Of a stretch of 64,000 nucleotides of DNA, positions 3 through 20,667 are shown in pieces (position 1 is the first letter of the stretch; each line of letters starts with the position of its first letter). The stretch is from Eutreptiella sp. 'Long Island Sound 2002'. Taxonomy: Eukaryota; Protista; Euglenida. The position numbers and the translations under genes were made by a program. The notes beneath the pieces are model-generated. The model saw only the letters and a program-made list of their open reading frames with translations, had not been told where the DNA came from and made no database searches. The DNA is taken from NCBI GenBank assembly GCA_964036045.1, contig OZ038379.1, positions 14,260,001-14,324,000 of the forward strand, read 5' to 3'.

Positions 3-3000
3 GAGGGAATGATCAGCGAGGGCAACATCAGCTTCGACCTTTCGGTGACAACCTTTGAATCCTCATTGGTGAGCGATGGCAAGGATGCCTTCATGGACAG
101 CATCAACGCCACGGTTGAATTTGGATCTGGTTTCCATGCTGGTGCAGTGAAAGCGGAGACCCCTGAGTCCTCAGAGGAGGTCGCCACCCGGCGGCTGCTG
201 CAAACGGATGCGGAGCTGCTTCAGTTCACCAAGCATCTGTGCGGTGGCAAGGGCTTCCTGTCCCGGGGCAACATCAGCATGGTGGCTGGTGCTGACACCA
301 CCTTCCGGGGCCCATTGAACCACACTGGCATGGGTATTGTTGAGCTCGCGGCTCTGGCCCGTTGCCTGTTCACCGGCCTTTATGATGACGTTGCAGATGG
401 CGTGGGTCGAGAGCTGTTGGCAGTGAAGCCAGACTTCATGAAGGGACGTGCCGGCCTTGTGGAGCATCGCGTTGGTGGTGCGGGTATGAAGAGCGCCGGT
501 AACATCACCTACGACATGGCTGTGACCACACATGAAGGGTCTTTGATCAGCGATGGTGAGGAGGCGTTCATGAACAGCATCAACGCCACGGTGGTGTTCA
601 CATCCATGCGCAATGCTGTCAAGATGGCGTCTGACATGGAGGAGTCAGGCTTTGCCGAGCGCCGCCTGCTGCAGACGGAAGACGGCAAGGACGTCATTAA
701 CCATCTGTGCGGTGGTTTGGGCTTCCACTCCGAGGGCAACATCAGCATTGAGGATGGAGCTTACACCACGTTCCAGGGACCACTGAACCACACTGGCAAG
801 GGTATCATGGAGATGAGTGCCGAAGGGCAGTGCCTGTTCACTGGTAAGTACGACAAGATGGTGGACGAGATGGGCCGAGAGTTGATGGCAGCGGGTCCAG
901 ACTTCCGCAAGGGACGTGCTGGTTTCACTGAGCATTACGTTGGAGCTGAGGGCTTTAGGAGTGCTGGTAACATCACCTATGACATGGCTGTGACGACGCA
1001 CGCAGGGTCATTGATCAGCGATGGTCAGACCGCATTCCTGGAGAGCCGCAACTCCTCCGTCATCTTTGCCTCCCAGGGCCACGACGACAACTCTGACGAT
1101 GATGTTACACCTTATGATACTCGCCGTTTGTTGCAGGCTGATGGCTTCTCAAAGCTTGTGGCCGAGTACACCCGCCACCTGTGTGGTGGTGTGGGCTTCC
1201 TGTCCATGGGCAACATCACCATTACGGATGGGGCTGACACTACGTTCCAGGGACCACTTAACCACACGGATCAGGGTCTCATTGAACTGACGGCTCGGGC
1301 ACGTGCGATGTTCACCGGGAAGTACGACGATGATGAGTCCACAGCTCAGGCCCTGGGCCATGTGCTGATGCAGAAGCCGGACTTCCTCAGCGGACGTGGT
1401 GGGCTCACGAAGCATCGTGTTGCGGCGTGGGGCATGAAGAGCGCAGGCAACATCAGCTACGACAGCGCTGTGACGACTTTCGAAGGACCGTTGACCAGTG
1501 ATGGGGCCACGGCGTTCATGAACAGCACCAACGCCGTGGTTGAGTTTTCATCGCTCTTCATGCTCGCCAAGATCGCCTTTGGGGATGCTGATGAATCCGA
1601 GTTCGGACGACGGCGGCTTCTCCAGTCGGATGATGGGCAGACATACACTCACCATATGTGCGGCGGTTTGGGCTTCCTGTCCCAGGGCAATATCAGCATT
1701 GGTGATGGAGCCGATACCACATTCCAGGGCCCCTTGAACCACACCGGCAAGGGTATTATGGAGATGACCTCTGCTGGACGTTGTCTGTTCACCGGTAAGT
1801 ATGACAAGATGGTGGACAAGACGGGCCGTGAGTTGATGGCTGCGGGTCCAGACTTCCTGAAGGGACGTGATGGTTTCACCGAGCATTACGTTGGAGGCGA
1901 GGGCTTCAGGAGTGCTGGTAATATCACCCATGACATGGCTGTGACCACATTCGAGGGATCTTTGGTCAACGATGGCGAGACTGCGTATATGAAGAGCCGC
2001 AATGCCACGGTGGTGTTTGGCTCTCTTGCCCGCACCGGTAAGGCATCTGACGTGGATGAAACTACCTCGGAACTGGGCAAGCGCCGTTTGCTGGCGACTG
2101 AGGATGGCGAGGACTTCACCGCTCATGTGGTCGGAGGTCTTGGTTTCTTGTCCGAGGGTAACATCAGCATCGTCACTGGTGCCGATACCACATTCCAGGG
2201 CCCATTGAACCAGACTGGCCTGGGTATCATTAAAATGACTGCTCTGGCACGTGCCTTGTTCACTGGTAAATATGGGCAGAAGAAGGTGGGCCGCGAGCTG
2301 ATGGAAGAAAAGCCAGACTTCGCCAAGGGACGTGCAGGAATGGTGAAGCACCGTGTTGCTGCAGAGGGAATGATCAGCGAGGGCAACATCAGCTTCGACC
2401 TTTCGGTGACAACCTTTGAATCCTCATTGGTGAGCGATGGCAAGGATGCCTTCATGGACAGCATCAACGCCACGGTTGAATTTGGATCTGGTTTCCATGC
2501 TGGTGCAGTGAAAGCGGAGACCCCTGAGTCCTCAGAGGAGGTCGCCACCCGGCGGCTGCTGCAAACGGATGCGGAGCTGCTTCAGTTCACCAAGCATCTG
2601 TGCGGTGGCAAGGGCTTCCTGTCCCGGGGCAACATCAGCATGGTGGCTGGTGCTGACACCACCTTCCGGGGCCCATTGAACCACACTGGCATGGGTATTG
2701 TTGAGCTCGCGGCTCTGGCCCGTTGCCTGTTCACCGGCCTTTATGATGACGTTGCAGATGGCGTGGGTAGAGAGCTGTTGGCAGTGAAGCCAGACTTCAT
2801 GAAGGGACGTGCCGGCCTTGTGGAGCATCGCGTTGGTGGTGCGGGTATGAAGAGCGCCGGTAACATCACCTACGACATGGCTGTGACCACACATGAAGGG
2901 TCTTTGATCAGCGATGGTGAGGAGGCGTTCATGAACAGCATCAACGCCACGGTGGTGTTCACATCCATGCGCAATGCTGTCAAGATGGCGTCTGACATGG

Positions 3001-6000
3001 AGGAGTCAGGCTTTGCCGAGCGCCGCCTGCTGCAGACGGAAGACGGCAAGGACGTCATTAACCATCTGTGCGGTGGTTTGGGCTTCCACTCCGAGGGCAA
3101 CATCAGCATTGAGGATGGAGCTTACACCACGTTCCAGGGACCACTGAACCACACTGGCAAGGGTATCATGGAGATGAGTGCCGAAGGGCAGTGCCTGTTC
3201 ACTGGTAAGTACGACAAGATGGTGGACGAGATGGGCCGAGAGTTGATGGCAGCGGGTCCAGACTTCCGCAAGGGACGTGCTGGTTTCACTGAGCATTACG
3301 TTGGAGCTGAGGGCTTTAGGAGTGCTGGTAACATCACCTATGACATGGCTGTGACGACGCACGCAGGGTCATTGATCAGCGATGGTCAGACCGCATTCCT
3401 GGAGAGCCGCAACTCCTCCGTCATCTTTGCCTCCCAGGGCCACGACGACAACTCTGACGATGATGTTACACCTTATGATACTCGCCGTTTGTTGCAGGCT
3501 GATGGCTTCTCAAAGCTTGTGGCCGAGTACACCCGCCACCTGTGTGGTGGTGTGGGCTTCCTGTCCATGGGCAACATCACCATTACGGATGGGGCTGACA
3601 CTACGTTCCAGGGACCACTTAACCACACGGATCAGGGTCTCATTGAATTGACGGCTCGGGCACGTGCGATGTTCACCGGGAAGTACAACGATGATGAGTC
3701 CACGGCTCAGGCCCTGGGCCATGTGCTGATGCAGAAGCCGGACTTCCTCAGCGGACGTGGTGGGCTCACGAAGCATCGTGTTGCGGCGTGGGGCATGAAG
3801 AGCGCAGGCAACATCAGCTACGACAGCGCTGTGACGACTTTCGAAGGACCGTTGACCAGTGATGGGGCCACGGCGTTCATGAACAGCACCAACGCCGTGG
3901 TTGAGTTTTCATCGCTCTTCATGCTCGCCAAGATCGCCTTGGCGGACTCCGTTGACGCCGATTTCTCGCAGCGCAGACTGCTGCAGCACGAAGATGGCAC
4001 CACGTCGATGGGCATGACCACGCATCTGTGCGGTGGTCTGGGATTCTACTCCGAGGGCAACATCAGTATTGCCTCCGGTGCGGATACCATCTTTCAGGGC
4101 CCCTTGAACCACACCGGGAAGGGCATCGTGGAGATGGCCTCTAAGGCCCGGGCGCTGTTCACTGGGAAGTACGATGATGACGAGTACACTTCGCAGAGCC
4201 TCGGTCACACGCTCATGGAGAAGCCCGACTTCTCGAAGGGCCGCGCCGGCTTCACGGAGCACCGGGTCGCTGGAATGGGAATGGACAGCGCCGGCAACAT
4301 CAGCGTCGTTTATTCTGTGACCACCTTCGAGGGGTCGTGCGTCAGTGAGGGCGACGAGGCGTTCATGGCCAGTGAGAACGGCACCGTCGTGTTCAGCTCG
4401 GCCCGGCACGACGCCGGCACCCTCGCCAGTGCAGAGGACTTGCAGGCGGAGCTGGGCAAGCGCCGGCTGCTGCAGACTGACGATGGCTCATCGGTGATGT
4501 CTGGCAACTTCACCAACCATTTGGTTGGCGGGCGTGGCTTCTTGTCCATGGGCAACATCACCATTGCCCCAGGGGCGGACACCACGTTCCAGGGGCCGCT
4601 GAACCACACCGGCCACGGTATCATCAGGATGACCGCCGACGCCCGTGCCTTGTTCACCGGGGCCTACGAGCGGCTGGTCCCGGCGGTGCCCCGCGAGCTG
4701 CACCGCCGCCGACCGCGCCGTCCCCGTCCTCCCCGTCGCGACGACGATGGGCCGGAGGCAAACGCCACTGAGAGCCGGGCCGCTCGCCAGCTCATGCAGG
4801 AGGTGGAGCTTAGCGTGGACTTCTCCAAGGGCCCCGCGGGTTTCGTGAACCACACCATTGCGGCGTACGGGATGATCAATGCCGGAAACGTGAGCTTCGA
4901 CCTGTCCGTCACGACGTTTTTGTCGTCATTGGTGAGCGATGGCCTGGAAGCGTTCATGGACAGCATCAACGCCACCGTTGTGTTTGGCTCCCGGCAGAGC
5001 GCCTCGGGGGCGGATTACGGGGACGATGCTCTAGCCTCCGAGTCCCGCCGCCGGTTGCTGCAGACTGATACTGAACTTGCCGAGTTCACCAAGCACATGT
5101 GCGGTGGCAAGGGCTTCCTGTCTCAAGGCAACATCAGCATGGTGGCTGGTGCTGACACCACCTTCCGGGGCCCATTGAACCACACTGGCATGGGTATTGT
5201 TGAGCTGGCGGCTCAGGCTCGTTGCCTGTTCACCGGCCTTTATGATGACGTTGCAGATGGCGTGGGTAGAGAGCTGTTGGCAGTGAAGCCAGACTTCATG
5301 AAGGGACGTGCCGGCCTTGTGGAGCATCGCGTTGGTGGTGCGGGTATGAAGAGCGCCGGTAACATCACCTACGACATGGCTGTAACCACACATGAAGGGC
5401 CGTTGATCAGTGACGGCGCAGACGCATTCATGAAGAGCATCAACGCCACGGTGGTGTTCACATCCATGCGCAATGCTGTGAAGATGGCATCTGACATGGA
5501 GGACACTGCGTCCGAATTGGGTCAGCGCCGTCTGCTGCAGACGGAAGACGGAATGGAAGTCACCAATCATCTGTGCGGTGGCAAGGGTTTCTTCTCCGAG
5601 GGTAACGTCAGCATTGAAGATGGAGCCTACATCACCTTCCAGGGCCCCTTGAACCACACCGGCAAGGGTATTATGGAGATGACCTCTGCTGGACGTTGTC
5701 TGTTCACCGGTAAGTATGACAAGATGGTGGATACGATGGGCCGTGAGTTGATGGCTGCGGGTCCAGACTTCCTGAAGGGACGTGATGGTTTCACCGAGCA
5801 TTACGTTGGAGGCGAGGGCTTCAGGAGTGCTGGTAATATCACCCATGACATGGCTGTGACCACATTCGAGGGATCTTTGGTCAACGATGGCGAGACTGCG
5901 TACATGAAGAGCCGCAATGCCACGGTGGTGTTTGGCTCCAAGGGCGTGGCGTCTGACGTGGATGAAACTACCTCGGAACTGGGCAAGCGCCGTTTGCTGG

Positions 6001-9000
6001 CGACTGAGGATGGCGAGGACTTCACCGCTCATGTGGTCGGAGGTCTTGGTTTCTTGTCCGAGGGTAACATCAGCATCGTCACTGGTGCCGATACCACATT
6101 CCAGGGCCCATTGAACCAGACTGGCCTGGGTATCATTAAAATGACTGCTCTGGCACGTGCCTTGTTCACTGGTAAATATGAGCAGAAGAAGGTGGGCCGC
6201 GAGCTGATGGAAGAAAAGCCAGACTTCGCCAAGGGACGTGCAGGAATGGTGAAGCACCGTGTTGCTGCAGAGGGAATGATCAGCGAGGGCAACATCAGCT
6301 TCGACCTTTCGGTGACAACCTTTGAATCCTCATTGGTGAGCGATGGCAAGGATGCCTTCATGGACAGCATCAACGCCACGGTTGAATTTGGATCTGGTTT
6401 CCATGCTGGTGCAATGAAAGCGGAGACCCCTGAGTCCTCAGAGGAGGTCGCCACCCGGCGGCTGCTGCAAACGGATGCGGAGCTGCTTCAGTTCACCAAG
6501 CATCTGTGCGGTGGCAAGGGCTTCCTGTCCCAAGGCAACATCAGCATGGTGGCTGGTGCTGACACCACCTTCCGGGGCCCATTGAACCACACTGGCATGG
6601 GTATTGTTGAGCTCGCGGCTCTGGCCCGTTGCCTGTTCACCGGCCTTTATGATGACGTTGCAGATGGCGTGGGCAGAGAGCTGTTGGCAGTGAAGCCAGA
6701 CTTCATGAAGGGACGTGCCGGCCTTGTGGAGCATCGCGTTGGTGGTGCGGGTATGAAGAGCGCCGGTAACATCACCTACGACATGGCTGTGACCACACAT
6801 GAAGGGTCTTTGATCAGCGATGGTGAGGAGGCGTTCATGAACAGCATCAACGCCACGGTGGTGTTCACATCCATGCGCAATGCTGTCAAGATGGCGTCTG
6901 ACATGGAGGAGTCAGGCTTTGCCGAGCGCCGCCTGCTGCAGACGGAAGACGGCAAGGACGTCATTAACCATCTGTGCGGTGGTTTGGGCTTCCACTCCGA
7001 GGGCAACATCAGCATTGAGGATGGAGCTTACACCACGTTCCAGGGACCACTGAACCACACTGGCAAGGGTATCATGGAGATGAGTGCCGAAGGGCAGTGC
7101 CTGTTCACTGGTAAGTACGACAAGATGGTGGACGAGATGGGCCGAGAGTTGATGGCAGCGGGTCCAGACTTCCGCAAGGGACGTGCTGGTTTCACTGAGC
7201 ATTACGTTGGAGCTGAGGGCTTTAGGAGTGCTGGTAACATCACCTATGACATGGCTGTGACGACGCACGCAGGGTCATTGATCAGCGATGGGGACCGTGC
7301 CTTCATGAACAGCACCAACGCAGCAGTAGTGTTCAGCTCCAAGCGCAATGCGGGCCAAACGGTTTCCGAATATGCCGCAGAAACTGGACTAGGCCAGCGT
7401 CGCCTGCTGATGGCCGAAGATGGAAGCGAGGTCACGAATCATTTGTGTGGTGGTTTGGGCTTCTACTCCGAGGGCAACATCAGCATTGAGGATCGAGCTT
7501 ACACCACGTTCCAGGGACCACTGAACCAGACTGGCCAGGGCATGTTTACGGTGACAGAAGAGGCGGCTGCCAGGTTCACTGGCAAATACGACAAGAAAGA
7601 TTCCGCAGGTCGTGAGTTGATGGCAATGCCAGATTTCTTGAAAGATCGCGCCTCATTGGTTCAGCACATCATTGCCGCATGGGGCACACGCAGCGCAGGC
7701 AATATGAGCTTCGACTTGTCGGTGACCACATTTGCAGCCTCCATGATCAGCGATGGTAAGAAGGCACACATGGACAGCACGAATGCCACTGTTGTGTTCT
7801 CCTCGTACTCAAGTGGAGGGGACTCAACATCTGGGGTCGATGCTGCCTCCTCTTCCCGCCGGCTGTTGCAGGCTGACGAGGACCTCACCCAGCATATCGT
7901 TGGTGGTCTCGGATTCCTTTCTAAGGGCAATATTAGCATTTTGGCTGGAGCTGACACCGTGTTTGAGGGCCGGTTGAACCACACTGGTCTGGGTCGCGTG
8001 GACCTCGAGGCTGGTGCACGTGCGCTGTTCACTGGTTTCTACGGCGATTGGGTTGCGGACATGGGCAAGAAGCTACTTGCTGCCAGACCTGACTTTATGA
8101 ACGGACGTGCTGGTTTGACGGCGCACTTTATCGGAGGTGAGGGTGTGAAGAGCGCCGGTAACATCACCTACGACATGGCTGTGACCACACATGAAGGGTC
8201 GTTGATCAGTGATGGTGAGGAGGCGTTCATGAACAGCATCAACGCCACGGTGGTGTTCACATCCATGCGCAATGCTGCCAAGATGGCGTCTGACATGGAG
8301 GAGTCAGGCTTTGCCGAGCGCCGCCTGCTGCAGACGGAAGACGGCAAGGACGTCATTAACCATCTGTGCGGTGGTTTGGGCTTCCACTCCGAGGGCAACA
8401 TCAGCATTGAGGATGGAGCTTACACCACGTTCCAGGGACCGCTGAACCACACTGGCAAGGGTATCATGGAGATGAGTGCCGAAGGGCAGTGCCTGTTCAC
8501 TGGTAAGTACGACAAGATGGTGGACGAGATGGGCCGAGAGTTGATGGCAGCGGGTCCAGACTTCCGCAAGGGACGTGCTGGTTTCACTGAGCATTACGTT
8601 GGAGCTGAGGGCTTTAGGAGTGCTGGTAACATCACCTATGACATGGCTGTGACGACGCACGCAGGGTCATTGATCAGCGATGGGGACCGTGCCTTCATGA
8701 ACAGCACCAACGCAGCAGTAGTGTTCAGCTCCAAGCGCAATGCGGGCCAAATGGTTTCCGAATATGCCGCAGAAACTGGACTAGGCCAGCGTCGCCTGCT
8801 GATGGCCGAAGATGGAAGCGAGGTCACGAATCATTTGTGTGGTGGTTTGGGCTTCTACTCCGAGGGCAACATCAGCATTGAGGATGGAGCTTACACCACG
8901 TTCCAGGGACCACTGAACCAGACTGGCCAGGGCATGTTTACGGTGACAGAAGAGGCGGCTGCCAGGTTCACTGGCAAATACGACAAGAAAGATTCCGCAG

Positions 9001-12000
9001 GTCGTGAGTTGATGGCAATGCCAGATTTCTTGAAAGATCGCGCCTCATTGGTTCAGCACATCATTGCCGCATGGGGCACACGCAGCGCAGGCAATATGAG
9101 CTTCGACTTGTCGGTGACCACATTTGCAGCCTCCATGATCAGCGATGGTAAGAAGGCACACATGGACAGCACGAATGCCACTGTTGTGTTCTCCTCGTAC
9201 TCAAGTGGAGGGGACTCAACATCTGGGGTCGATGCTGCCTCCTCTTCCCGCCGGCTGTTGCAGGCTGACGAGGACCTCACCCAGCATATCGTTGGTGGTC
9301 TCGGATTCCTTTCTAAGGGCAATATTAGCATTTTGGCTGGAGCTGACACCGTGTTTGAGGGCCGGTTGAACCACACTGGTCTGGGTCGCGTGGACCTCGA
9401 GGCTGGTGCACGTGCGCTGTTCACTGGTTTCTACGGCGATTGGGTTGCGGACATGGGCAAGAAGCTACTTGCTGCCAGACCTGACTTTATGAACGGACGT
9501 GCTGGTTTGACGGCGCACTTTATCGGAGGTGAGGGTGTGAAGAGCGCCGGTAACATCACCTACGACATGGCTGTGACCACACATGAAGGGCCATTGATCA
9601 GCGATGGTGAGGAGGCGTTCATGGACAGCATCAACGCCACCGTTGTGCTGGGTTCCATCCTCACTGCCGACCGCATGGTGTCTGACATGGAGGAGTCAGG
9701 CTTTGCCGAGCGCCGTCTGCTGCAGACGGAGGATGGCAAGGAAGTTTACGTGACCAAGCATCTGTTCGGCGGACGTGGCTTCCGCTCCATGGGGAATGTT
9801 AGCATTGCAGACGGGGCCGACACCACATTCTTTGGCCCGTTCAACCACAGCGGATATGGCATCGTGGAGCTGGCTGCACTGGCGCACGCAATGTTCACCG
9901 GGGCTTACGATGGTGAGGACTGGTTGGCGGACGTAGTGGGCCCTGTGGAGCACACTGTGGGCGCGCTTGGTTTGTCTAGCGCAGGCAACATCACATTCAA
10001 GACAGCGGTGACGCGGTTCGCCGGGTCACTGTGGAGCTACGGGGAGTTCTCGCACCTTCTGAGCACTGATGCCAAGGTGGTGTTTGCTTCCGGGCTGCCT
10101 GCCAGCTCCCGTGATGCGGATGACCAGGAAATGTCCAGCTCCCGCAAGGTGCTGCAGATGGAGGACGAGTGTGCGCCGGATTCCACAAACCACTTGGTGG
10201 CAGGTCTTGGATTCCTGTCCATGGGCAACGTCAGCATCGAAGCTGGTGCTGACACTGTGTTCCAGGGTCCCCTGACGCACATGGGCAAGGGTATCATCGA
10301 CATGACCGCTTGTGCCCATGCCAAGTTTGCTGGGGCTCTTGAGGAGTTCACGCAGCACTATGTGGGCGGGTCTGGTATGACCAGCGCCGGGAACATCACG
10401 TTCGAGACATCAGTGACCAATTTCGTGGCCGCGTTGCGCAGCTACGGAGCTCGATCATTCATGCAGAGCGACAAGGCAATGGTGATGTTCTCCTCCATGC
10501 TGCCCGACGGCTGTGCGGCCGAATACGAGGCTCTGGGACTTCTTGATGCCGACGACGAGGGGATGTCGTCCGCCCGTCGGCTGCTTCAAATGCGGGAGGA
10601 ATGTGTCAGGGATTTCACGTGGACGCGGCATTTGGTGGGAGGCTACGGCTTCCTGTCCATGGGCAACATCAGCATTGGGGCCGGGGCGGACACCACGTTC
10701 CTTGGCCCTCTGGACCACAAGGGAGACGGCCTCGTGAACATGAGCGCTGGTGCGCACGCGCTGTTCACTGGGAACTTCGACGGCATGAATTGGATGCACG
10801 AGGAGGAGGCCCTGACGAAGCACCGCATCGCAGGCCAGGGTATGCTCAGTGCCGGCAGGATCACTTTCTTGTCTGCGGTGACCACGTTCTTTGGCACCCT
10901 GTTCAGCCACGGTGCAGAGGCATTCATGAACAGCACAGGCGCCAAGGTGGTTTTCGGGTCGCAACACGAGGCCTTTGCGGATGCCTTCTTCGGCTCGATG
11001 GAGGGTGGCCAAGGATGGACCAAGCACTACGTCGGGGGGCGGGGCTTCGCGTCCCAGGGCAACATCAGCGTGGCCATGGGGGCCGAAACCACAATGGAGG
11101 GCCCTCTGAGGCATACCGGAGAGGGCTCAGTGGACATTGAGGACCTCGGAAAGCTGCTGTTCACTGGTGCCTACGACCTGCTGCCCGATTTCTTCAGCGG
11201 CACCGATGGTCTTATCAAGCACCACATTGCCGGTGCCGGGGTGAACAGCGCAGGCAACATCAGCTGCAGCGGCGCTGTGACCATTTTCGAAGGGGGATTG
11301 CAGAGTCAGGGAGGCAATGCTGTCTTGCAGAGCAGGGAATGCGCGATGGTGTTTGCTTCCGGGCTGCCTGCCAGCTCCCGTGATGCGGATGACCAGGAAA
11401 TGTCCAGCTCCCGCAAGGTGCTGCAGATGGAGGACGAGTGTGCGCCGGATTCCACAAACCATTTGTTGGCAGGTCTTGGATTCCTGTCCATGGGCAACGT
11501 CAGCATCGAAGCTGGTGCTGACACTGTGTTCCAGGGTCCCCTGACGCACATGGGCAAGGGTATCATCGACATGACCGCTTGTGCCCATGCCAAGTTTGCT
11601 GGGGCTCTTGAGGAGTTCACGCAGCACTATGTGGGCGGGTCTGGTATGACCAGCGCCGGGAACATCACGTTCGAGACATCAGTGACCAATTTCGTGGCCG
11701 CGTTGCGCAGCTACGGAGCTCGATCATTCATGCAGAGCGACAAGGCAATGGTGATGTTCTCCTCCATGCTGCCCGACGGCTGTGCGGCCGAATACGAGGC
11801 TCTGGGACTTCTTGATGCCGACGACGAGGGGATGTCGTCCGCCCGTCGGCTGCTTCAAATGCGGGAGGAATGTGTCAGGGATTTCACGTGGACGCGGCAT
11901 TTGGTGGGAGGCTACGGCTTCCTGTCCATGGGCAACATCAGCATTGGGGCCGGGGCGGACACCACGTTCCTTGGCCCTCTGGACCACAAGGGAGACGGCC

Positions 12001-15000
12001 TCGTGAACATGAGCGCTGGTGCGCACGCGCTGTTCACTGGGAACTTCGACGGCATGAATTGGATGCACGAGGAGGAGGCCCTGACGAAGCACCGCATCGC
12101 AGGCCAGGGTATGCTCAGTGCCGGTAACATCACCGTCGACACCGCCGTGACCCATTTTGCAGGGGCTCTGTGGAGCTATGGCCCGTTGGCCTTCCTGAAG
12201 AGCAACATGGCCAAGGTCGTGCTAGGGTCCGTCCTGCCGAAGGACTGTGTTGATGAGTTCGCTGAACTCGCTCGGGCCGACATGGAGGAGGAGATGTCCA
12301 GCGCCCGCCGGCTGCTGCAGGTGCAGGACAAATGTGTGGCGTACACCCAGCACCTGATCGGCGGCCTCGGCTTTCTCTCGATGGGCAACGTCAGCGTGGA
12401 CGCCGGGGCCGATGCCACCTTCGAGGGGCCGTTCGACCACCAGGGCCCCGGCATCGTCAACGTCAGCGCGGGCGGGCACGCGAGGCTCACCGGCAACTAC
12501 GGCGACGCTGTCATCGACTGGAAGCAGGGCGCTGAGGCCCTCGTGAAGCACTTCATCGGGGCCATGGGTCTGGCCAGCGCCGGCAATCTGTCGTTCGTGA
12601 CCTCCGTCACCGAGTTCATGGGGCCGCTTCTGAGCCATGGGCTGCAGGCGTACCTGCAGAGCGAGGACGCGATAGTGGTGCTGGGCTGCGGGGAGGAGGA
12701 TCCGATGATGCAGGCGCTCGTGAGCGACGAGGACCGTGTGAAACACCGAATCGGCGGCCTGGGATGGAGGTCCATGGGCAACATCAGCGTCCGAGGCGGC
12801 GCAGACGTCACGTTGGAGGGCCCTCTGACCCACGAGGGCGAGGGGCTGATCACGCTGGCGGAGCGGGCCTTGATGATGATCACCGGCCGGTACAACGACC
12901 TGCCCGACTCATTCCTGTCGATGGAGGACTTTGTGGAGCACAGCGTCGCGGGGTTGGGTATGAACAGCTCCGGCGACGTCACCGTCGACTGGGCCAAGAT
13001 GGTGTTCGCCGGGCCGCTGTGGAGCGACGGCGTGGGGGCGTTCCTGCAGAGCCGCAACGCGGTGGTGGAGTTTGGCGCCGGGCTGCCCCGGAGCTGCGCG
13101 GACGAGTTTGCGGCGTTCTCCATCGTCCGCGGCGACGACGAGCGGGGGTCGAGCGCGCGGCAGCTCCTGCAGATCCGCGACGAGTGCGTCAGCGACCTCG
13201 TGCGGCACTTCGTCGGGGGCCGCGGGTTCCACTCCATGGGCAACCTCAGCATTGAGGTCGGGGCCGAGACCACGTTCTCGGGCCCGCTCAACCACAGCGG
13301 CCAGGGCTTCTTCCGCACGGCCGCCGGGGGACACGCGGTTTTCGGCGGCGACTACTTCGGGGACGACTGGCTGACAGACGCCCTGTCGCTCGTGCAGCAC
13401 CTCGTCGCTGGCGGCGGCATGCACAGCGCCGGCAACGTCACGTTCCAGACCTCCCGGACGCGGTTCGCCGCCCCGTTGGTGAGTCGCGGTGCCCTCGCGT
13501 ACCTGTTCAGCAGCGACGCCGCCGTCGAGTTCGCGTCGCCACTGCCCGAGGACTGCGTGCTGGAGTTCACGGAGTTGTTCTCCCGCCCGATGCCAATGTC
13601 GGACGCCTCCTTCCCCGGCGACGAGGAGTTCTCCTACGCCCGCCGGCTCCTGCAGACGCGGGGTGACTGCATCCGGGAGGCCACCAAACACGTTATCGAC
13701 GGCCTTGGCTTCTTGTCCCGCGGCAACATCAGCATTGCCCCCGGCGCCGAGACCACATTCCGCGGCCCTCTGACCCACATGGGCACCGGCTACGTCACCC
13801 TGACCCCCGGCGCGCACGCGCGGTTCGCCGGCTCCGAGGACGAGGATGACCGCGAGGACTGGTACCCGGGACTGCCCGGGGCCGTGTGGCACACCATCGC
13901 CGGGCGCGGCATGTCCAGCGGCGGCAACATCTCGTTCCAGACCTCCACGACCACGTTCGAGGGCCCGCTGTGGAGCGAGGGCCTGCTGCGCAGCGTCAAC
14001 GCGCTGGTCACGCTGGCCTCGATGCTGCCGGACGACTGCGTCGAGGCGCTGGCCAGCGTCGGGGACATGGAGGACATGGACGACGCCGCGGCAAAGATGG
14101 GCCAAATTGGGGCCGAGTGCTTCGAGGGGATCGAACACTTCATCGGCGGCCTCGGGTTCGAATCCCGGGGCAACCTCAGCATCGGCGTCGGAGGGCGCGC
14201 CCAGTTCCAGGGCCCGCTCTCCCACGAGGGCGACGGCCTCGTCGACGTGCTGGTCGGCGCCGCGGCACTGTTCGCGGAGGGCGACTTCCCCGTGGCCCAC
14301 TTCGTCGGGGGCCGCGGCATGCGGAACCGCGGCAACGTCACCATCGGCGCCGCGAACATGACGTTCCAGGGGCCGCTGCACAGCGCCGGGGTCGCGGCCG
14401 TTCTGGAGTCCCTCGAGGGCGCGTGGGTGCACTTTGCCGGGCAGACCCGGGACGTGCTCGCGCTCCTCGACGACTTCGCTCCTCGACGACTCTACGACTT
14501 CTCCTTTGACCTGCCGGACGAGGCTTTCACGCACCACCGCGTGGGAGGCCGGGGCTTCCGCAGCCACGGCAACTTGACCTGCGGGAGCGGCGCGGCCCTG
14601 ACCGTCGACGGCGCGCTCCGGCACTACGGCGACTACCTCGCGACCGCGAACGCGTCGCGGCTGGTGCTCTCCGGCTCCGGCGTCGGGGAGGTCGTCCGCC
14701 ACGTCGTGTTCGGGCGGCGCTTCGAGAACAGCGGGAACTCGACCTTCGAGAACTCCAACACAACGGTCCGGTCCATCCTCCAGAGCACCGGCAAACTCTT
14801 CGTGTCCCGCACCGGCGTCCTCACCATCACTGACCCCTGCGACGACACCGTCGACACCGGCGACGACGCCACGCTTGGCGCCCGGCAGCTGCTGCAGACG
14901 GACTGCACCGCGGACCCGCACACCATCGCCGGATCCGGCCTCGCGTTCGAGGGCGCGGTCACCTTCGACTCCGGGTCTGAGACGCTCGCGACCGGGCCCG

Positions 15001-15347
15001 TCGAGGGCTCTGGGCCGATGAGCGTCAAGGGGAAGCTGACGTTGAGCGGCACGAACGTGGAGCACAAACTGACGGGACCGACCGAAGTGAGTGGGCGGTT
15101 GGCAGTGGGTGAGGACACGAAGTTCGTGTTGGAGGCGGTGCTGACTCTGCAGCCTGGCGCCGTCTTCGAGCTGCTGTTCGGCGAGGAGACGACCGGGGCC
15201 GTGCTGGTGATGGGTCACGCGCGGAAGCTGCTGCAGACGTCGGCGGCGGTGCAGGCCCAGGCCACGGTGGAGAGCATTGCCGCGGGCACTGATGCCAGCA
15301 ATCCGGCCATCGTGGACATCAGCCTGACGACGGTGCCCACCCTGCAG
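3..15347 (+). CDS. Giant exon (5' end outside window) of a very large modular secreted-type glycoprotein / putative polyprotein: ~33 beta-solenoid-like modules separated by RxLL-type loops
   Basis: Stop-free frame from nt 3 to 15347. The ATG at 9 is internal, as the same EGMISEG context recurs at 2364. Repeats HxxGGxGFxSxGNISIxxGAxTTFxGPLNHTG and HxVxxxGMxSAGNITxxxxVTTFxGxLxSDG, with many N-x-S/T sequons. Ends CAG|GTGCGG (phase 0), followed by non-coding CT-rich DNA. Confidence 0.93.
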
Positions 15348-15359
15348 GTGCGGTGTTTC

Positions 15360-15760
15360 AGCCTCCTTAGCCCTCCTCTGTCCTCTCTAGCACTCTGCAG
15401 CCCTTTTCAACTCTCCCAATCATCCCTCTATACCCAATCCTTCCCCACTACCCTGTCTCTACAACCCTCTTCAATCCTCTCCAATCCTCCAAGACCCCGT
15501 TCAACGTTATCCAATCCTCTGCTATTCCTCTCTATTCTTGTGCGTCCTTTCCACTCCTCCTTCATCCTCTCCAGTCATTGCCATTCCATTCCAATCCTCT
15601 GCATTCCTTTCCATTCCGCTCCAGCTGTTTTTCCCGCTCTTCGCTGCTCCACGATCATCCCCCTCTCCAGATCCTCTCCATTCCTTATACGCAGCCATTT
15701 TCCACCCTCTTCATCACCAGGTTTTCTCCAGCTGTTAATATCCCACTGCAACCCTGTCCA
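15360..15760 (+). repeat. Pyrimidine (CT)-rich low-complexity stretch at the start of intron 1
   Basis: Abrupt switch from GC-rich codons to a C/T-dominated sequence right after the GT donor at 15348; the translation becomes S/P/L/F low-complexity. Confidence 0.8.
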
Positions 15761-15810
15761 ATCAGGAGAGATACAAATAATATCATCTCCGATGATGACG
15801 TTATGTAAAT

Positions 15811-15951
15811 CTGAGTACCGCAGTCCGGAAAACTGAGTGTGTACTCAGTTTAATGGTGTTATCATTATTCTCGTAAATAATATTTGTCATTATTCTCGTA
15901 AATAATTATAATAACCCGAGTATACTCAGTCTCACACCGTTCTGTACTCAG
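15811..15951. mobile_element. Small AT-rich MITE-like palindromic element in intron 1
   Basis: Terminal inverted CTGAGTAC...GTACTCAG; internal 9-bp hairpin AAACTGAGT-gtgt-ACTCAGTTT (15830-15851); TCATTATTCTCGTAAATAAT present twice. Confidence 0.45.
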
Positions 15952-16091
15952 TTTCCCCCTGTCCAATTCTCTACAACACTCTAAAGCTTCGTTATGTTCA
16001 GATTCATTAGCTTTCATGTGTCAAGCTGTTGGACTGTCTGACCTTCGAAAACTATGCCACTGTTCCCACATGTGCCCCCATCTTTCGGCAG

Positions 16092-16273
16092 GAGCCCCCT
16101 CTTGAGGTGACTGCACAGACCTGCGACCAAATCATCAATCTGGCCAATGTCGAGATGAAGGTCGGCCTGAGCTCCGCAGTGCGGGACGAAATTTTGGCAG
16201 TGTCCCCGTACACGGGACGCAGCAAAGTACCACTCGTGTACTGTGGTGCCACCACGAGCTCTTCAGTGCGCAA
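16092..16273 (+). CDS. Exon 2 (in-window numbering) of giant gene: EPPLEVTAQTCDQIINLANVEMK...TTSSSVRK
   Basis: CAG acceptor at 16091 in phase 0 matches the exon 1 donor; AA|GTATGT donor in phase 2 matches the next exon. Confidence 0.75.
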
Positions 16274-17097
16274 GTATGTGTACCAGTGTGGACTCATGCA
16301 TGCGCTTGGACTCACACCTACCCCCTTGTCTTTGGCGTGCGTGTATGCGTGCACTGCGGGGCCCTCCATGACCGCCAGGGTGGACGCCCACAGGGAGTGC
16401 ACAGCGCTCATCGAGGGGGGGGGGGCTTGGGGAGGGGTTTTGCCACACGTAAAGTACAGGCATCACGTTGGTCAGTCCATAGCCATAGCAAGCTCGCCCT
16501 TGCGCAGGGAAGGGGTGCATGATGCGGGGCTGCAGGGCGCGGTAGGGCACAAGCATGCACTGTGCATGGTCTTTTCGTGTCGTGTCGTGCTGAGAGGGAG
16601 GCCGCTATGAGCTTGATGAAAATGTTGGGCGTCGCATACACACACACCGTAGTCCTTCGCCCTTTGTTCGACAGTCGAGTGCCTCTGAGTGAAACAAGCC
16701 CTGCTGGACGGCTTGTTGAACATTGTGAGTCCTTGGGAGGCTCTGTGCACACTTTTGGCCCTCCAGCCACATCCTGTCCGGCATCGCACATGCATGATTT
16801 TGTTTGCCCATGCCGAGTGTGCACAGCTTTGGCAACCCACACTCCACATTCCCAACTGCACGAAGAAGTTTTGTCTGCTTTGTGCCACATGTGCATATCC
16901 GCTTTGCGCATACAGTATTGATGCCCCCCCCCCCCCTCGGGCTCAGTGCTCGGGCTCCAGGTCCACAGACCCCCAGCCCAGGGGATGCAGAGCACAGTCC
17001 ACGAGCAGCATGCACCCTCCCACCACGCAGGCAGGCTGCTGCCACGCAACCTCAATTCTGGCTTTCACTCAGCCTCCTGCCCCATCCCGCTACACAG

Positions 17098-17270
17098 GTT
17101 GATGAGCATCGCAGATGCTGGCGGTCTCTACATTTACACCACGACGTCGGCGGGTGTGGAGGTGAACATTTCCGCGGAGTTCTCCCTTGAAGTGGTCAAT
17201 GGGTACATCCAGCTGTCCAACACCGGTCGCGTGTTCGACCTCACAACAGGGATCCTGTCCACTGTGTCCG
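17098..17270 (+). CDS. Exon 3: LMSIADAGGLYIYTTTSAGVEVNISAEF...TGILSTVS
   Basis: Pyrimidine tract plus CAG acceptor in phase 2 (AA|G = Lys); G|GTATTC donor in phase 1; protein-like, GC3-rich. Confidence 0.8.
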
Positions 17271-17898
17271 GTATTCATCCTCCCGCCTCCTTCATCCCCC
17301 CCAGTCCATCCAAAGGCACATTCTGCCGCCGCCATCTGTTCGTTCGTTTTCAGGATTTCGTCTGTGTTGGCCTGACAGTCCATTTTTGTTAAGTGCTTGC
17401 CAACCAAAGGCAGATGGTGCCTGATAAAATTGAGCATTGATCAATAAGAAAGGCCCCCTTGTAGGACATGAGCAGATTGCGGGCGAATGAGGGATGGTAG
17501 GACACGGACAGCGTGCAGGCTAAAAGCACAATAACAGCTTGCAGGCCACCTTCTCAGCATATTGAATGAAATGACTCTGTGACATCAAGCAATATCTCCA
17601 ACCAGAGCCACAACCCTCCACAACCCACGCCCTGTGCTATGCCCCCTATTTCCCCATTTCCCCCCCTTCCCCCACATTTCCCCCATTTTCCAAAACTCCA
17701 AAATCCTGGTTTGGTGAGTTGGTGAGTTCGGTGGCGGTTAGTGCGGATCCTTGCGAGAGGGGGCTGCTGCTGTGGTGCCTGCGGTTCACAGTGCCATGGA
17801 GGGAAAATTTCACATGGCTGGGGGAGGTTTGTGAGACCGAGTACATATTCCCCCCCTTTTCCTGTGCATCCCAACCCGCAAGTGCAACATACTGCCAG

Positions 17899-18472: not shown

Positions 18473-18675
18473 AAAACATTGGAAATGGCTTCGAGGTGTT
18501 GTCCCGGCTGCTGGCGCCCTACAAGTATTTGCAGCAGTACAACCTCACCAACATCTACAACATCCCGAATCTCACCTTCGCCTTGATGAACGGCAGGAGC
18601 AACGCCACGCGCCGCCTCAATGCCACCAAGGACACTGCCATTGACATCCCCCCCACGTGGAAGCAGGCCCCCGGG
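18473..18675 (+). CDS. Exon 4: ENIGNGFEVLSRLLAPYKYLQQYNLTNIYNIPNLTF...WKQAPG
   Basis: TTTTCACAG acceptor in phase 1; GGG|GTATGG donor in phase 0; N-glycosylation sequons; high GC3. Confidence 0.85.
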
Positions 18676-18883: not shown

Positions 18884-18983
18884 GTTGACAAGTCTGTGGT
18901 GTCGGTTGTGTCGGCACAAAACATCGGCATGATCGGCGAGACGCTGTCCAACTCCTACGGAGTGCAGACCAGTTCCATTGTCG
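18884..18983 (+). CDS. Exon 5: VDKSVVSVVSAQNIGMIGETLSNSYGVQTSSIV
   Basis: CTGCAG acceptor in phase 0; G|GTATGT donor in phase 1. Confidence 0.8.
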
Positions 18984-19288
18984 GTATGTTTGGCATGGTT
19001 GCCCTCCTGGTGCTCCGGCAGATCGCAAGCCGCCCGATCACGTGCGATTTCTGCCCATGTCCGAATGCCCCGATGCCTCCATGCCTTTGACTCCTGCAGC
19101 ACATCGTTCCTATCCTGGTCGCTCTCTACTCCTCCGCGCCCCCCTCACACCCCCCCCCCCCCGTGCCTTCAGCTTTTCATGCCCCTGCCCCCCCCCTTGC
19201 GGCCCAAGCCCATACTTCGTCTCCCCAAACAGGGAGACAGGCCCTGTCTTCAACTCGCAGGCCCTCCGAGCAAAGAGGACGTGACCAG

Positions 19289-19810: not shown

Positions 19811-20375
19811 TACGTTTGGTACCCCCCCCCCCTGCCATCAAAAGGTGAAGTATGTGGTACGTACACCTGGAAGTACCAACCGGCATACTCGAGTCTTCCC
19901 CCCCCCCCCCCCTCCCACTCCCGGGCGGTTGGGGGGGGAGTCGCGTATCAACCCCAGACATCGTCTCGCTGTCGTGTAGGCACTCTGAGAACACGCGCAT
20001 GTTCTTTCCGGGGCGTTTATTCCCCATGTTGTCCCACTGCACGCTTTGTACCCGGTGTTGGCAGGAGGCCCTTGCGAAGTGAGGTCCTGTGGATCTAAGG
20101 GCGGAAAAGGTTTGCGTACCTAAAGTCGGACGCAAATTTTTTTCTGCCCCTTTAATGAGTTCCATTTTTTGTCTCTGATGTGGGTGGGTAGGTTCCGGTG
20201 GAATGCATCCCCCTCCCCCCCCCGGGGGGGGGGGGGGTTCGAGCCATCGTGTTGGTATTTTCTATGCTCAAACGAAAGGGAGTGGGACCAATCGGGACCA
20301 CAGAGTACTGGGGCACAATCTGTTTTGATGTGTTTTCCGCACGAGGGAACGCCCCGCGCCATCGCACGCGTGCAG

Positions 20376-20667
20376 GTGACGTGATGTCCATCGAGCGCCA
20401 CGACAGCACCGGCGCCATCATCACCAACGCGCCCTTCACGTACAACCTCTACGCGCCGGGCGTGACCGGGATGCTGCAGGTGTACCGGTGGCCCGCCGGG
20501 GGCCGGGCGGCGCGCAGCGTTGTGGCCGAGGGGGGCACAGTCACCCGCTGTGCCAGTGCGGCGTGCGGCGGGCCCGGGTGGTGGACCGTGACCGCCGTGG
20601 GCACGTCCGTGTTCGCGGCCGTCGCGAACACCAACAACTTCATCACGTCCGTGTTCCCCAACGACCG
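20376..20667 (+). CDS. Exon 7: DVMSIERHDSTGAIITNAPFTYNLYAPG...TSVFPNDR
   Basis: TGCAG acceptor in phase 1; CG|GTATGT donor in phase 2; very GC-rich coding-like sequence. Confidence 0.85.

Follow-up and report, generated by a model that had tools for sequence, protein, structure and literature searches.

What is being conserved when a giant repeat protein keeps the same short string at the end of module after module? The question is raised by a gene of the euglenid Eutreptiella sp. 'Long Island Sound 2002', seen in a 64,000-nucleotide stretch of DNA (the window; assembly GCA_964036045.1, contig OZ038379.1, positions 14,260,001 to 14,324,000 of the forward strand); coordinates below are positions in the window, on the + strand, unless another contig is named. 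Within the window is the 3' third of a giant gene that is expressed and belongs to a small family restricted to its lineage. On the + strand, frame 3 has no stop codon from the left edge to 15836, and the 3' part of the giant exon (3-15347, 5115 codons), an open reading frame (ORF) that runs off the left edge and whose end is set by a spliced RNA contig, encodes 29 full repeat modules and one partial module. An initial annotation of this exon had proposed a beta-solenoid polyprotein, secreted and cut at 30 periodically spaced RxLL motifs. From the sequence, the polyprotein reading is plausible, with the motif a candidate protease site at the end of a flexible loop.

All 30 motifs listed in the initial annotation, of the form R-[RKQ]-[LV]-L, are at the codons given there and in one open frame. 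They comprise 25 RRLL, two RKVL, two RQLL, and one RKLL, and the next residue is Q in 26/30, A in 2/30, and M in 2/30. RRLLQ is at 189-203, 660-674, 1122-1136, 1611-1625, 2550-2564, 3021-3035, 3483-3497, 3972-3986, 4461-4475, 5049-5063, 5526-5540, 6456-6470, 6927-6941, 7857-7871, 8319-8333, 9249-9263, and 9711-9725, and, in loops bracketed by cysteines, at 10575-10589, 11844-11858, 12306-12320, and 13641-13655. RRLLA is at 2082-2096 and 5988-6002, and RRLLM at 7398-7412 and 8790-8804. RKVLQ is at 10143-10157, with a downstream Cys only, and at 11412-11426, in a Cys-bracketed loop whose upstream Cys is in the preceding strand; RQLLQ is at 13158-13172 and 14883-14897, both Cys-bracketed; and the final motif, RKLLQ, is at 15222-15236, 42 codons from the exon end.

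The protein composition predicts 0.29 such sites, and among 2000 shuffled versions the mean was 0.30 and the highest count 4, although the 30 observed sites represent only 19 distinct DNA contexts because of recent block duplications. RRLL is the second-ranked tetrapeptide in the protein, after GNIS of the module core. The motifs are 144 to 196 amino acids apart, save for three wider gaps (279, 284, and 414 amino acids) that arise because four C-terminal linkers have no motif. The variable acidic, Ser-rich loop said to precede each motif is borne out by measurement: in the preceding 20 residues, D+E make up 20.8% versus 12.6% overall and S 15.2% versus 7.8%, with a net charge of about -3.

Each module, of about 155 amino acids, consists of two homologous halves of about 50 amino acids, A and B. 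Half A reads T-x-H-L-C-G-G-x-G-F-x-S-x-G-N-I-S...G-A-D-T-T-F-x-G-P-L-N-H-T-G-x-G...A-L-F-T-G, and half B reads E-H-x-V-G-G-x-G-M-x-S-A-G-N-I-T...V-T-T-F-E-G-x-L-x-S-D-G...N-A-T-V-V-F-x-S. RRLLQ forms the end of the variable acidic linker from B to A, and a weaker copy is often present in the mid-module linker from A to B. There are 15 of these weaker second sites in mid-module linkers (408-9017): 14 are R-E-L-[LM]-[AE] (at 408, 876, 1827, 2292, 2769, 3237, 5268, 5742, 6198, 6675, 7143, 7611, 8535, and 9003) and one is RQLMQ (at 4785). Because the mid-module linker so often holds a weaker copy, the sequence suggests an ancestral unit made up of a single half with a single motif. Module 10 differs, at 4740-4830, by a 40-amino-acid Arg/Pro-rich insertion, RRRPRRPRPPRRDDDGPEANATESRAARQLMQ, in its mid-module linker, terminating in RQLMQ.

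Pairwise identity among the modules ranges from 38% to 100%. The first 20 (189-9710), which we call young, are 153 to 196 amino acids long, and several are 94-100% identical by block duplication; the older modules (9711-14882) are 38-57% identical to the young ones, have short mid-module linkers, and include the four inter-module linkers that have no motif. The last giant-exon segment (14883-15347) is beta-rich, is not a standard module, and bears the final two motifs. Modules 1, 6, and 14 are 99-100% identical to one another, as are modules 2 and 7, and the pairs 5/13, 15/18, 16/19, and 22/24 are each 99% identical. These near-exact multi-module copies point either to recent segmental duplication within the exon or, the repeat being long, to an uncertain assembly; the even DNA depth described below was examined for 13.6-17.7 kb only.

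Two further features bear on where the product resides. N-x-S/T sequons number 117 against 25 expected (4.7-fold), with four per module at fixed positions, and for this reason the product is probably a secretory-pathway glycoprotein, although the sequon Asn residues could alternatively be structural. Cysteines flank the C-terminal loops, seven of which have the form C-x(20-28)-RRLLQ-x(2-3)-C and an eighth a more distant upstream Cys; this layout recurs in relatives, and the Cys pairs suggest a luminal protein.

Several observations indicate that selection acts on the motif as protein. The codons vary at Arg (CGC, CGG, CGT, AGA), Leu (CTG, CTC, CTT, TTG), and Gln (CAG, CAA), and because these changes are synonymous and the residues are kept, it is the protein, rather than the string CTGCAG, that is constrained. 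We also considered a DNA- or RNA-level explanation for CTGCAG, and rejected it on the synonymous variants, including CAA. In an alignment of 34 non-redundant linkers from the window and its relatives, the motif columns carry 4, 3, 3, 4, and 3 bits, equal to the best structural columns, and the approximately 25 columns preceding the motif carry 0 to 1 bit. Modules without a motif still align and fold, and since the four C-terminal linkers have lost the motif and their modules persist, the fold is independent of it. Taking codon variation, bit profile, and the survival of modules after motif loss together, this pattern is typical of a short linear motif within a disordered loop and unlike that of a fold determinant, and the motif is, by these sequence measures, under protein-level selection.

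Structure prediction places the motif outside the modelled core. An AlphaFold2 model of 536 residues, covering three and a half young modules and built from an 18-row paralogue alignment (model 1), has a predicted TM score (pTM) of 0.74, with a predicted local distance difference test score (pLDDT) of about 90 in the helix halves and below 50 in both types of linker; its motifs (residues 63-67, 220-224, and 374-378) are all within low-confidence segments. Model 2, 500 residues of older, Cys-bracketed modules, has a pTM of 0.77 and a core pLDDT of about 90, and its motifs (residues 63-67 and 217-221) are in or border segments of pLDDT below 50. VIA-align matches the modelled fold to EtpA, EspP, pertactin, TibA, UpaB, and Ag43 with Z scores of 16-20 (up to 20.4) over 250 to 350 aligned residues. 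These matches span model residues 1-520, and the modules are therefore modelled as stacking in one continuous right-handed beta-helix, with the linkers as excursions from it. The proposed beta-solenoid thus gains a specific form, a right-handed parallel beta-helix, and in neither model is the motif buried in the fold core. Foldseek searches of the PDB and AFDB clusters listed only beta-helix proteins, with non-significant E-values and TM scores below 0.3, since global superposition suffers from the long loops; it took VIA-align to settle the fold. An ESM Atlas feature search yielded no more than weak leads, scoring 0.73 or below, among bacterial haemagglutinin and S-layer-like clusters.

The long, narrow parallel right-handed beta-helix is shared with bacterial adhesins (EtpA and FHA, of the two-partner-secretion kind, and the autotransporter passengers pertactin, Ag43, TibA, and EspP), whose identity to the Eutreptiella protein is only 8-13%, with no Pfam match; the Eutreptiella gene is eukaryotic and contains introns, and its helix extrudes acidic motif loops periodically. 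In three segments of the window and six relatives, Pfam scans found no match above the cut-off, the Chlamydia Pmp, haemagglutinin, and other beta-helix repeat families included.

A module profile searched against 1.84 billion representative proteins recovered only 20 clusters, and no source gave a name to the relatives in them. The unique C-terminal 900 residues, used as a query for full-length giant relatives, matched nothing, and a five-module query matched a single unnamed ENA ORF; the family is thus unannotated in public protein sets. In the literature searched, nothing was found on RRLL or RRLLQ with Euglena, on a euglenid site-1 protease, or on Euglena secretory polyproteins that concerns this protein or family.

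The relatives keep the motif. Close relatives (P0001-P0011 and P0021) carry R-R-L-L-Q, and twice C-R-L-L-Q, at their module borders. A paralogue on a 1.06-Mb ENA contig (L001; ERZ25074135, ctg10392) has a single ORF of 12,631 amino acids, and its DNA is only about 63% identical to that of the window array; over the 2792 residues read, 18/18 module borders carry RRLLQ and there are seven mid-module R-x-L-L-[QEA] sites, its mid-module linker often being R-x-L-L-[QE]. The claim that the motif is retained where modules have diverged therefore holds within the array, in modules only 38-50% identical, as well as in this paralogue, and no relative was found that kept the modules and lacked the motif. 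Distant relatives in Joint Genome Institute (JGI) metagenomes (P0012, P0013, P0017, and P0031), all type-I membrane proteins, share the helix half-module and have R-R-L-x-[DG] following their domains.

Upstream of the paralogue's big ORF are smaller module-bearing exons with GT..AG introns, one of them exactly after RRLLQ (CAG/GT ... CAG/ATG). In this 5' part (L001 1-12566) the introns are at varied points (after RRLLQ, H-L-V-G-G, and T-T-F-Q), and the 3' part, of 12,631 amino acids, is intron-free, a layout that suggests intron loss or expansion via duplication within a single exon. An apparent signal peptide in P0003, followed by "Q-MEDG", was considered and rejected: the DNA has a ...TTGCAG/ATGGAA acceptor, and the upstream ORF P0006 ends ...CTGCTGCAG/GTGTCT, which places an intron just after RRLLQ and makes the 'signal peptide' an intron read-through. 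For P0024 and P0028 (on an ENA contig of 393,914 bp), the gene call joins two family modules to a long, unrelated, Cys/His-rich, transposon-like ORF, probably an element inserted in or beside another family member.

What, then, might read the motif? The explanation we lean towards, tentatively and without calling it probable, is that a secretory endoprotease, of the S1P/SKI-1 type or of the diatom RXL type, recognises and cuts the motif. The S1P/SKI-1 recognition tetrapeptide, (R/K)-x-(hydrophobic)-(L/T/...), is fitted by 30/30 sites, so that the match to an S1P consensus claimed in the initial annotation extends to every one of them. Moreover, RRLL and RKLL are identical to sites in substrates of S1P/SKI-1 (MBTPS1; plant SBT6.1), with P4 Arg, P2 hydrophobic, and P1 Leu matching, although known substrates have one or two sites and here there are dozens. 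SKI-1-like subtilases are widespread in eukaryotes (PMC6713707), the E. gracilis exoproteome includes an extracellular subtilisin-related peptidase (PMC10038220), and published work on plant pectin methylesterases describes RRLL and RKLL subtilase processing motifs in their pro-regions. Exposure of the sites in the lumen is hinted at by the enriched sequons, the Cys pairs, and the low-pLDDT loops, the N-terminus being outside the window.

The diatom rule, R-x-(x)-L at the C-terminal end of each repeat unit, is also fitted by the motif. In the secretory repeat precursors of diatoms (silaffin Sil1p, silacidins, cingulins, and frustulins) each unit ends in R-x-(x)-L, is cut by an endoprotease, and has its tail trimmed, with RRIL or RRNL removed from the units of Sil1p (PMC4557024); the protease was still unidentified as of 2017 (PMC5525289). 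The position of the site at the end of each repeat makes these a closer precedent than the Plasmodium and Toxoplasma export elements (PEXEL/TEXEL). Their units are short, unstructured, and Lys/Ser-rich, whereas those of Eutreptiella are 155-amino-acid folded beta-helix modules for which cleavage is predicted, and there is no sequence homology between the stramenopile and euglenid proteins. The Euglena plastid polyproteins (LHCPII and the RuBisCO small subunit) likewise have several mature units in one chain, cut at decapeptide linkers. They come from the same kind of organism, but both linkers and units differ, plastid proteins in one case and a sequon-bearing beta-helix module in the other.

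The giant product is modelled as a rod-like right-handed beta-helix, with halves of three coils each; after each module the chain leaves it in a flexible loop, acidic and Ser-rich and some 25 residues long, that finishes in R-[RKQ]-[LV]-L-Q. If such a secretory-pathway endoprotease acts here, it would read the P4 Arg, P2 Leu/Val, and P1 Leu, with cleavage between Leu and Gln; the exposed N-terminal Gln may then cyclise to pyroglutamate, which would account for its conservation, and the C-terminal RRLL tail may be trimmed, as in silaffins. The cuts could free bricks of 16 kDa, or could merely nick a rod that stays stacked and is disulfide-linked at the Cys-bracketed loops. A fuller version is possible but doubtful: precursors of >12,000 residues would receive some 80 to 160 periodic R-x-L-L/Q cuts from a Golgi RXL-type protease or an S1P orthologue, giving pyroglutamate-capped, N-glycosylated bricks of 8-17 kDa stacked end to end as extracellular, extrusome, or flagellar-hair material. 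An extrusome, wall, or mucus role, as in the initial annotation, is speculation.

A number of points weigh against cleavage. It is a prediction from sequence; the N-terminus and any signal peptide are outside the window; and no candidate protease has come from the genome, in which an S1P homologue was not searched for. The AlphaFold2 helix is uninterrupted across the linkers, so that a cut need not separate units, and Cys pairs around eight loops would keep cut chains joined; on both grounds, cuts may nick the rod and release nothing. In two relatives (C-R-L-L-Q) Cys replaces the P4 Arg. Finally, Q at +1 is conserved as strongly as the putative P residues, and S1P specificity has no such need.

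The conserved Gln is the starting point for a serious although unlikely alternative, in which the motif stays uncleaved and serves as a docking or cross-linking tag, shown every ~3 nm along an intact rod. Such a tag might be a Gln donor for transglutaminase, cross-linking rods into a sheath, wall, or hair, or might instead bind another protein or a lectin. Leu-Leu-Gln is similar to known transglutaminase Q-tags, and Q is nearly as conserved here as R and L (26/30), but the four sites with A or M in its place still have RRLL, and the invariant Arg, Leu/Val, and Leu suit a protease subsite pattern. The modelled location of the motif in exposed flexible loops of a continuous helix, the resemblance of the Cys-bracketed loops to display loops, and the fact that the nearest folds are giant intact beta-helix adhesins all fit a tag, but no transglutaminase or partner is known here.

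Rather more improbable is a structural role, with the motif forming a short amphipathic turn or helix that packs on the next coil or makes a rod-to-rod contact, and that AlphaFold would have missed because the alignment is shallow. The alignments do have only 18 to 20 paralogous rows, and AlphaFold2 places weak helices over the motif (H58-62 in model 1; H60-66 and H215-218 in model 2). The same alignment, however, gives a pLDDT of 28-48 at the motif and 90 in the flanking coils, modules survive loss of the motif, and the loop before it is free in length and sequence.

An export signal of the PEXEL/TEXEL kind, cut after R-x-L by an aspartyl protease of the endoplasmic reticulum, is very improbable. 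PEXEL acts once, near the N-terminus, directly after the signal sequence. The string R-x-L-x-Q is in common and R-x-L-x-[EQD] is matched at 26/30 sites, but in place of a single N-terminal site the 5115 residues contain 30 copies, all of them internal and none close to an N-terminus; the Leu at position 4 is invariant, which PEXEL does not need, and position 5 is A or M in four cases. The analogy drawn in the initial annotation is therefore abandoned. Least credible of all is that the motif has no function, being a carry-over of recent tandem duplication or concerted evolution, or a DNA or RNA signal, given that CTGCAG resembles a splice acceptor: several modules are 94-100% identical and the paralogue has an intron exactly after RRLLQ, but the motif is kept where modules are 38-50% identical and in the 63%-identical paralogue, next to a scrambled loop, and its codons differ, with CAA for Q removing the AG.

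Repeat precursors with RXL- or S1P-type sites and giant beta-helix surface proteins are each already known. The combination is new: folded beta-helix modules, with dozens to >100 sites, in euglenids, and in single ORFs of >12,600 amino acids. Cleavage at these sites would make this the largest polyprotein-type precursor on record by a wide margin, and the first known to release folded beta-helix modules where others release peptides or enzymes; RXL/S1P-type repeat processing, described in diatoms and plants, would then include euglenids, and the search for the protease would gain dozens of near-identical natural substrates. Should the modules indeed be stacked as bricks, they would represent a new mode of polymer building and a second independent lineage for an RXL protease. 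If the sites are uncut, the proteins nonetheless form a class of giant eukaryotic beta-helix proteins, unannotated and restricted to one lineage, that display a periodic linear motif.

The end of the giant exon and the exons that follow are defined by RNA contigs from two estuary metatranscriptomes, at 100% identity. The junctions 15347/16092, 16273/17098, 17270/18473, 18675/18884, and 18983/20376 are all GT..AG and keep the frame open, and because contigs identical to the gene join exons in this way, the gene is transcribed and spliced; position 15347, where the initial annotation ended the coding region, is a real exon end. Intron 1 (15348-16091, GT..AG) contains a CT-rich microsatellite at 15510-15623, consisting of 11 copies of a 10-bp unit, and the ORF stretch up to 15836 is read-through into this intron. 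The exons beyond it are at 16092-16273 (182 nt, frame still open), 17098-17270 (173 nt), 18473-18675 (203 nt), and 18884-18983 (100 nt), and the next starts at 20376-20407 (acceptor AG at 20374-20375), in an RNA contig that reaches 152 nt past the previous exon. For the 100-nt exon we set the donor GT at 18984-18985, the mRNA being identical to that from the automated cut at 18985. The protein thus extends past 15347 through at least five small non-repeat exons, with its 3' end beyond those seen. In these C-terminal exons (~270 amino acids seen) no domain was identified, the spliced C-terminal domain not having been run against family libraries. The exon at 18473-18675, which encodes ...SNATRRLNATKD..., has an R-R-L-N string between two sequons.

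In what is likely a DNA run, depth is about 37x and even over 13600-17724, which indicates that this region is single copy. Within intron 3, at 17540-17750, contig depth in the likely DNA run rises from ~37 to ~2400 and many contigs end; this segment is a short, high-copy, MITE-like repeat (miniature inverted-repeat transposable element). The estuary metatranscriptomes (runs X1-X4) contain spliced transcripts 100% identical to the gene, and the organism or a very close strain was therefore active in those field samples.

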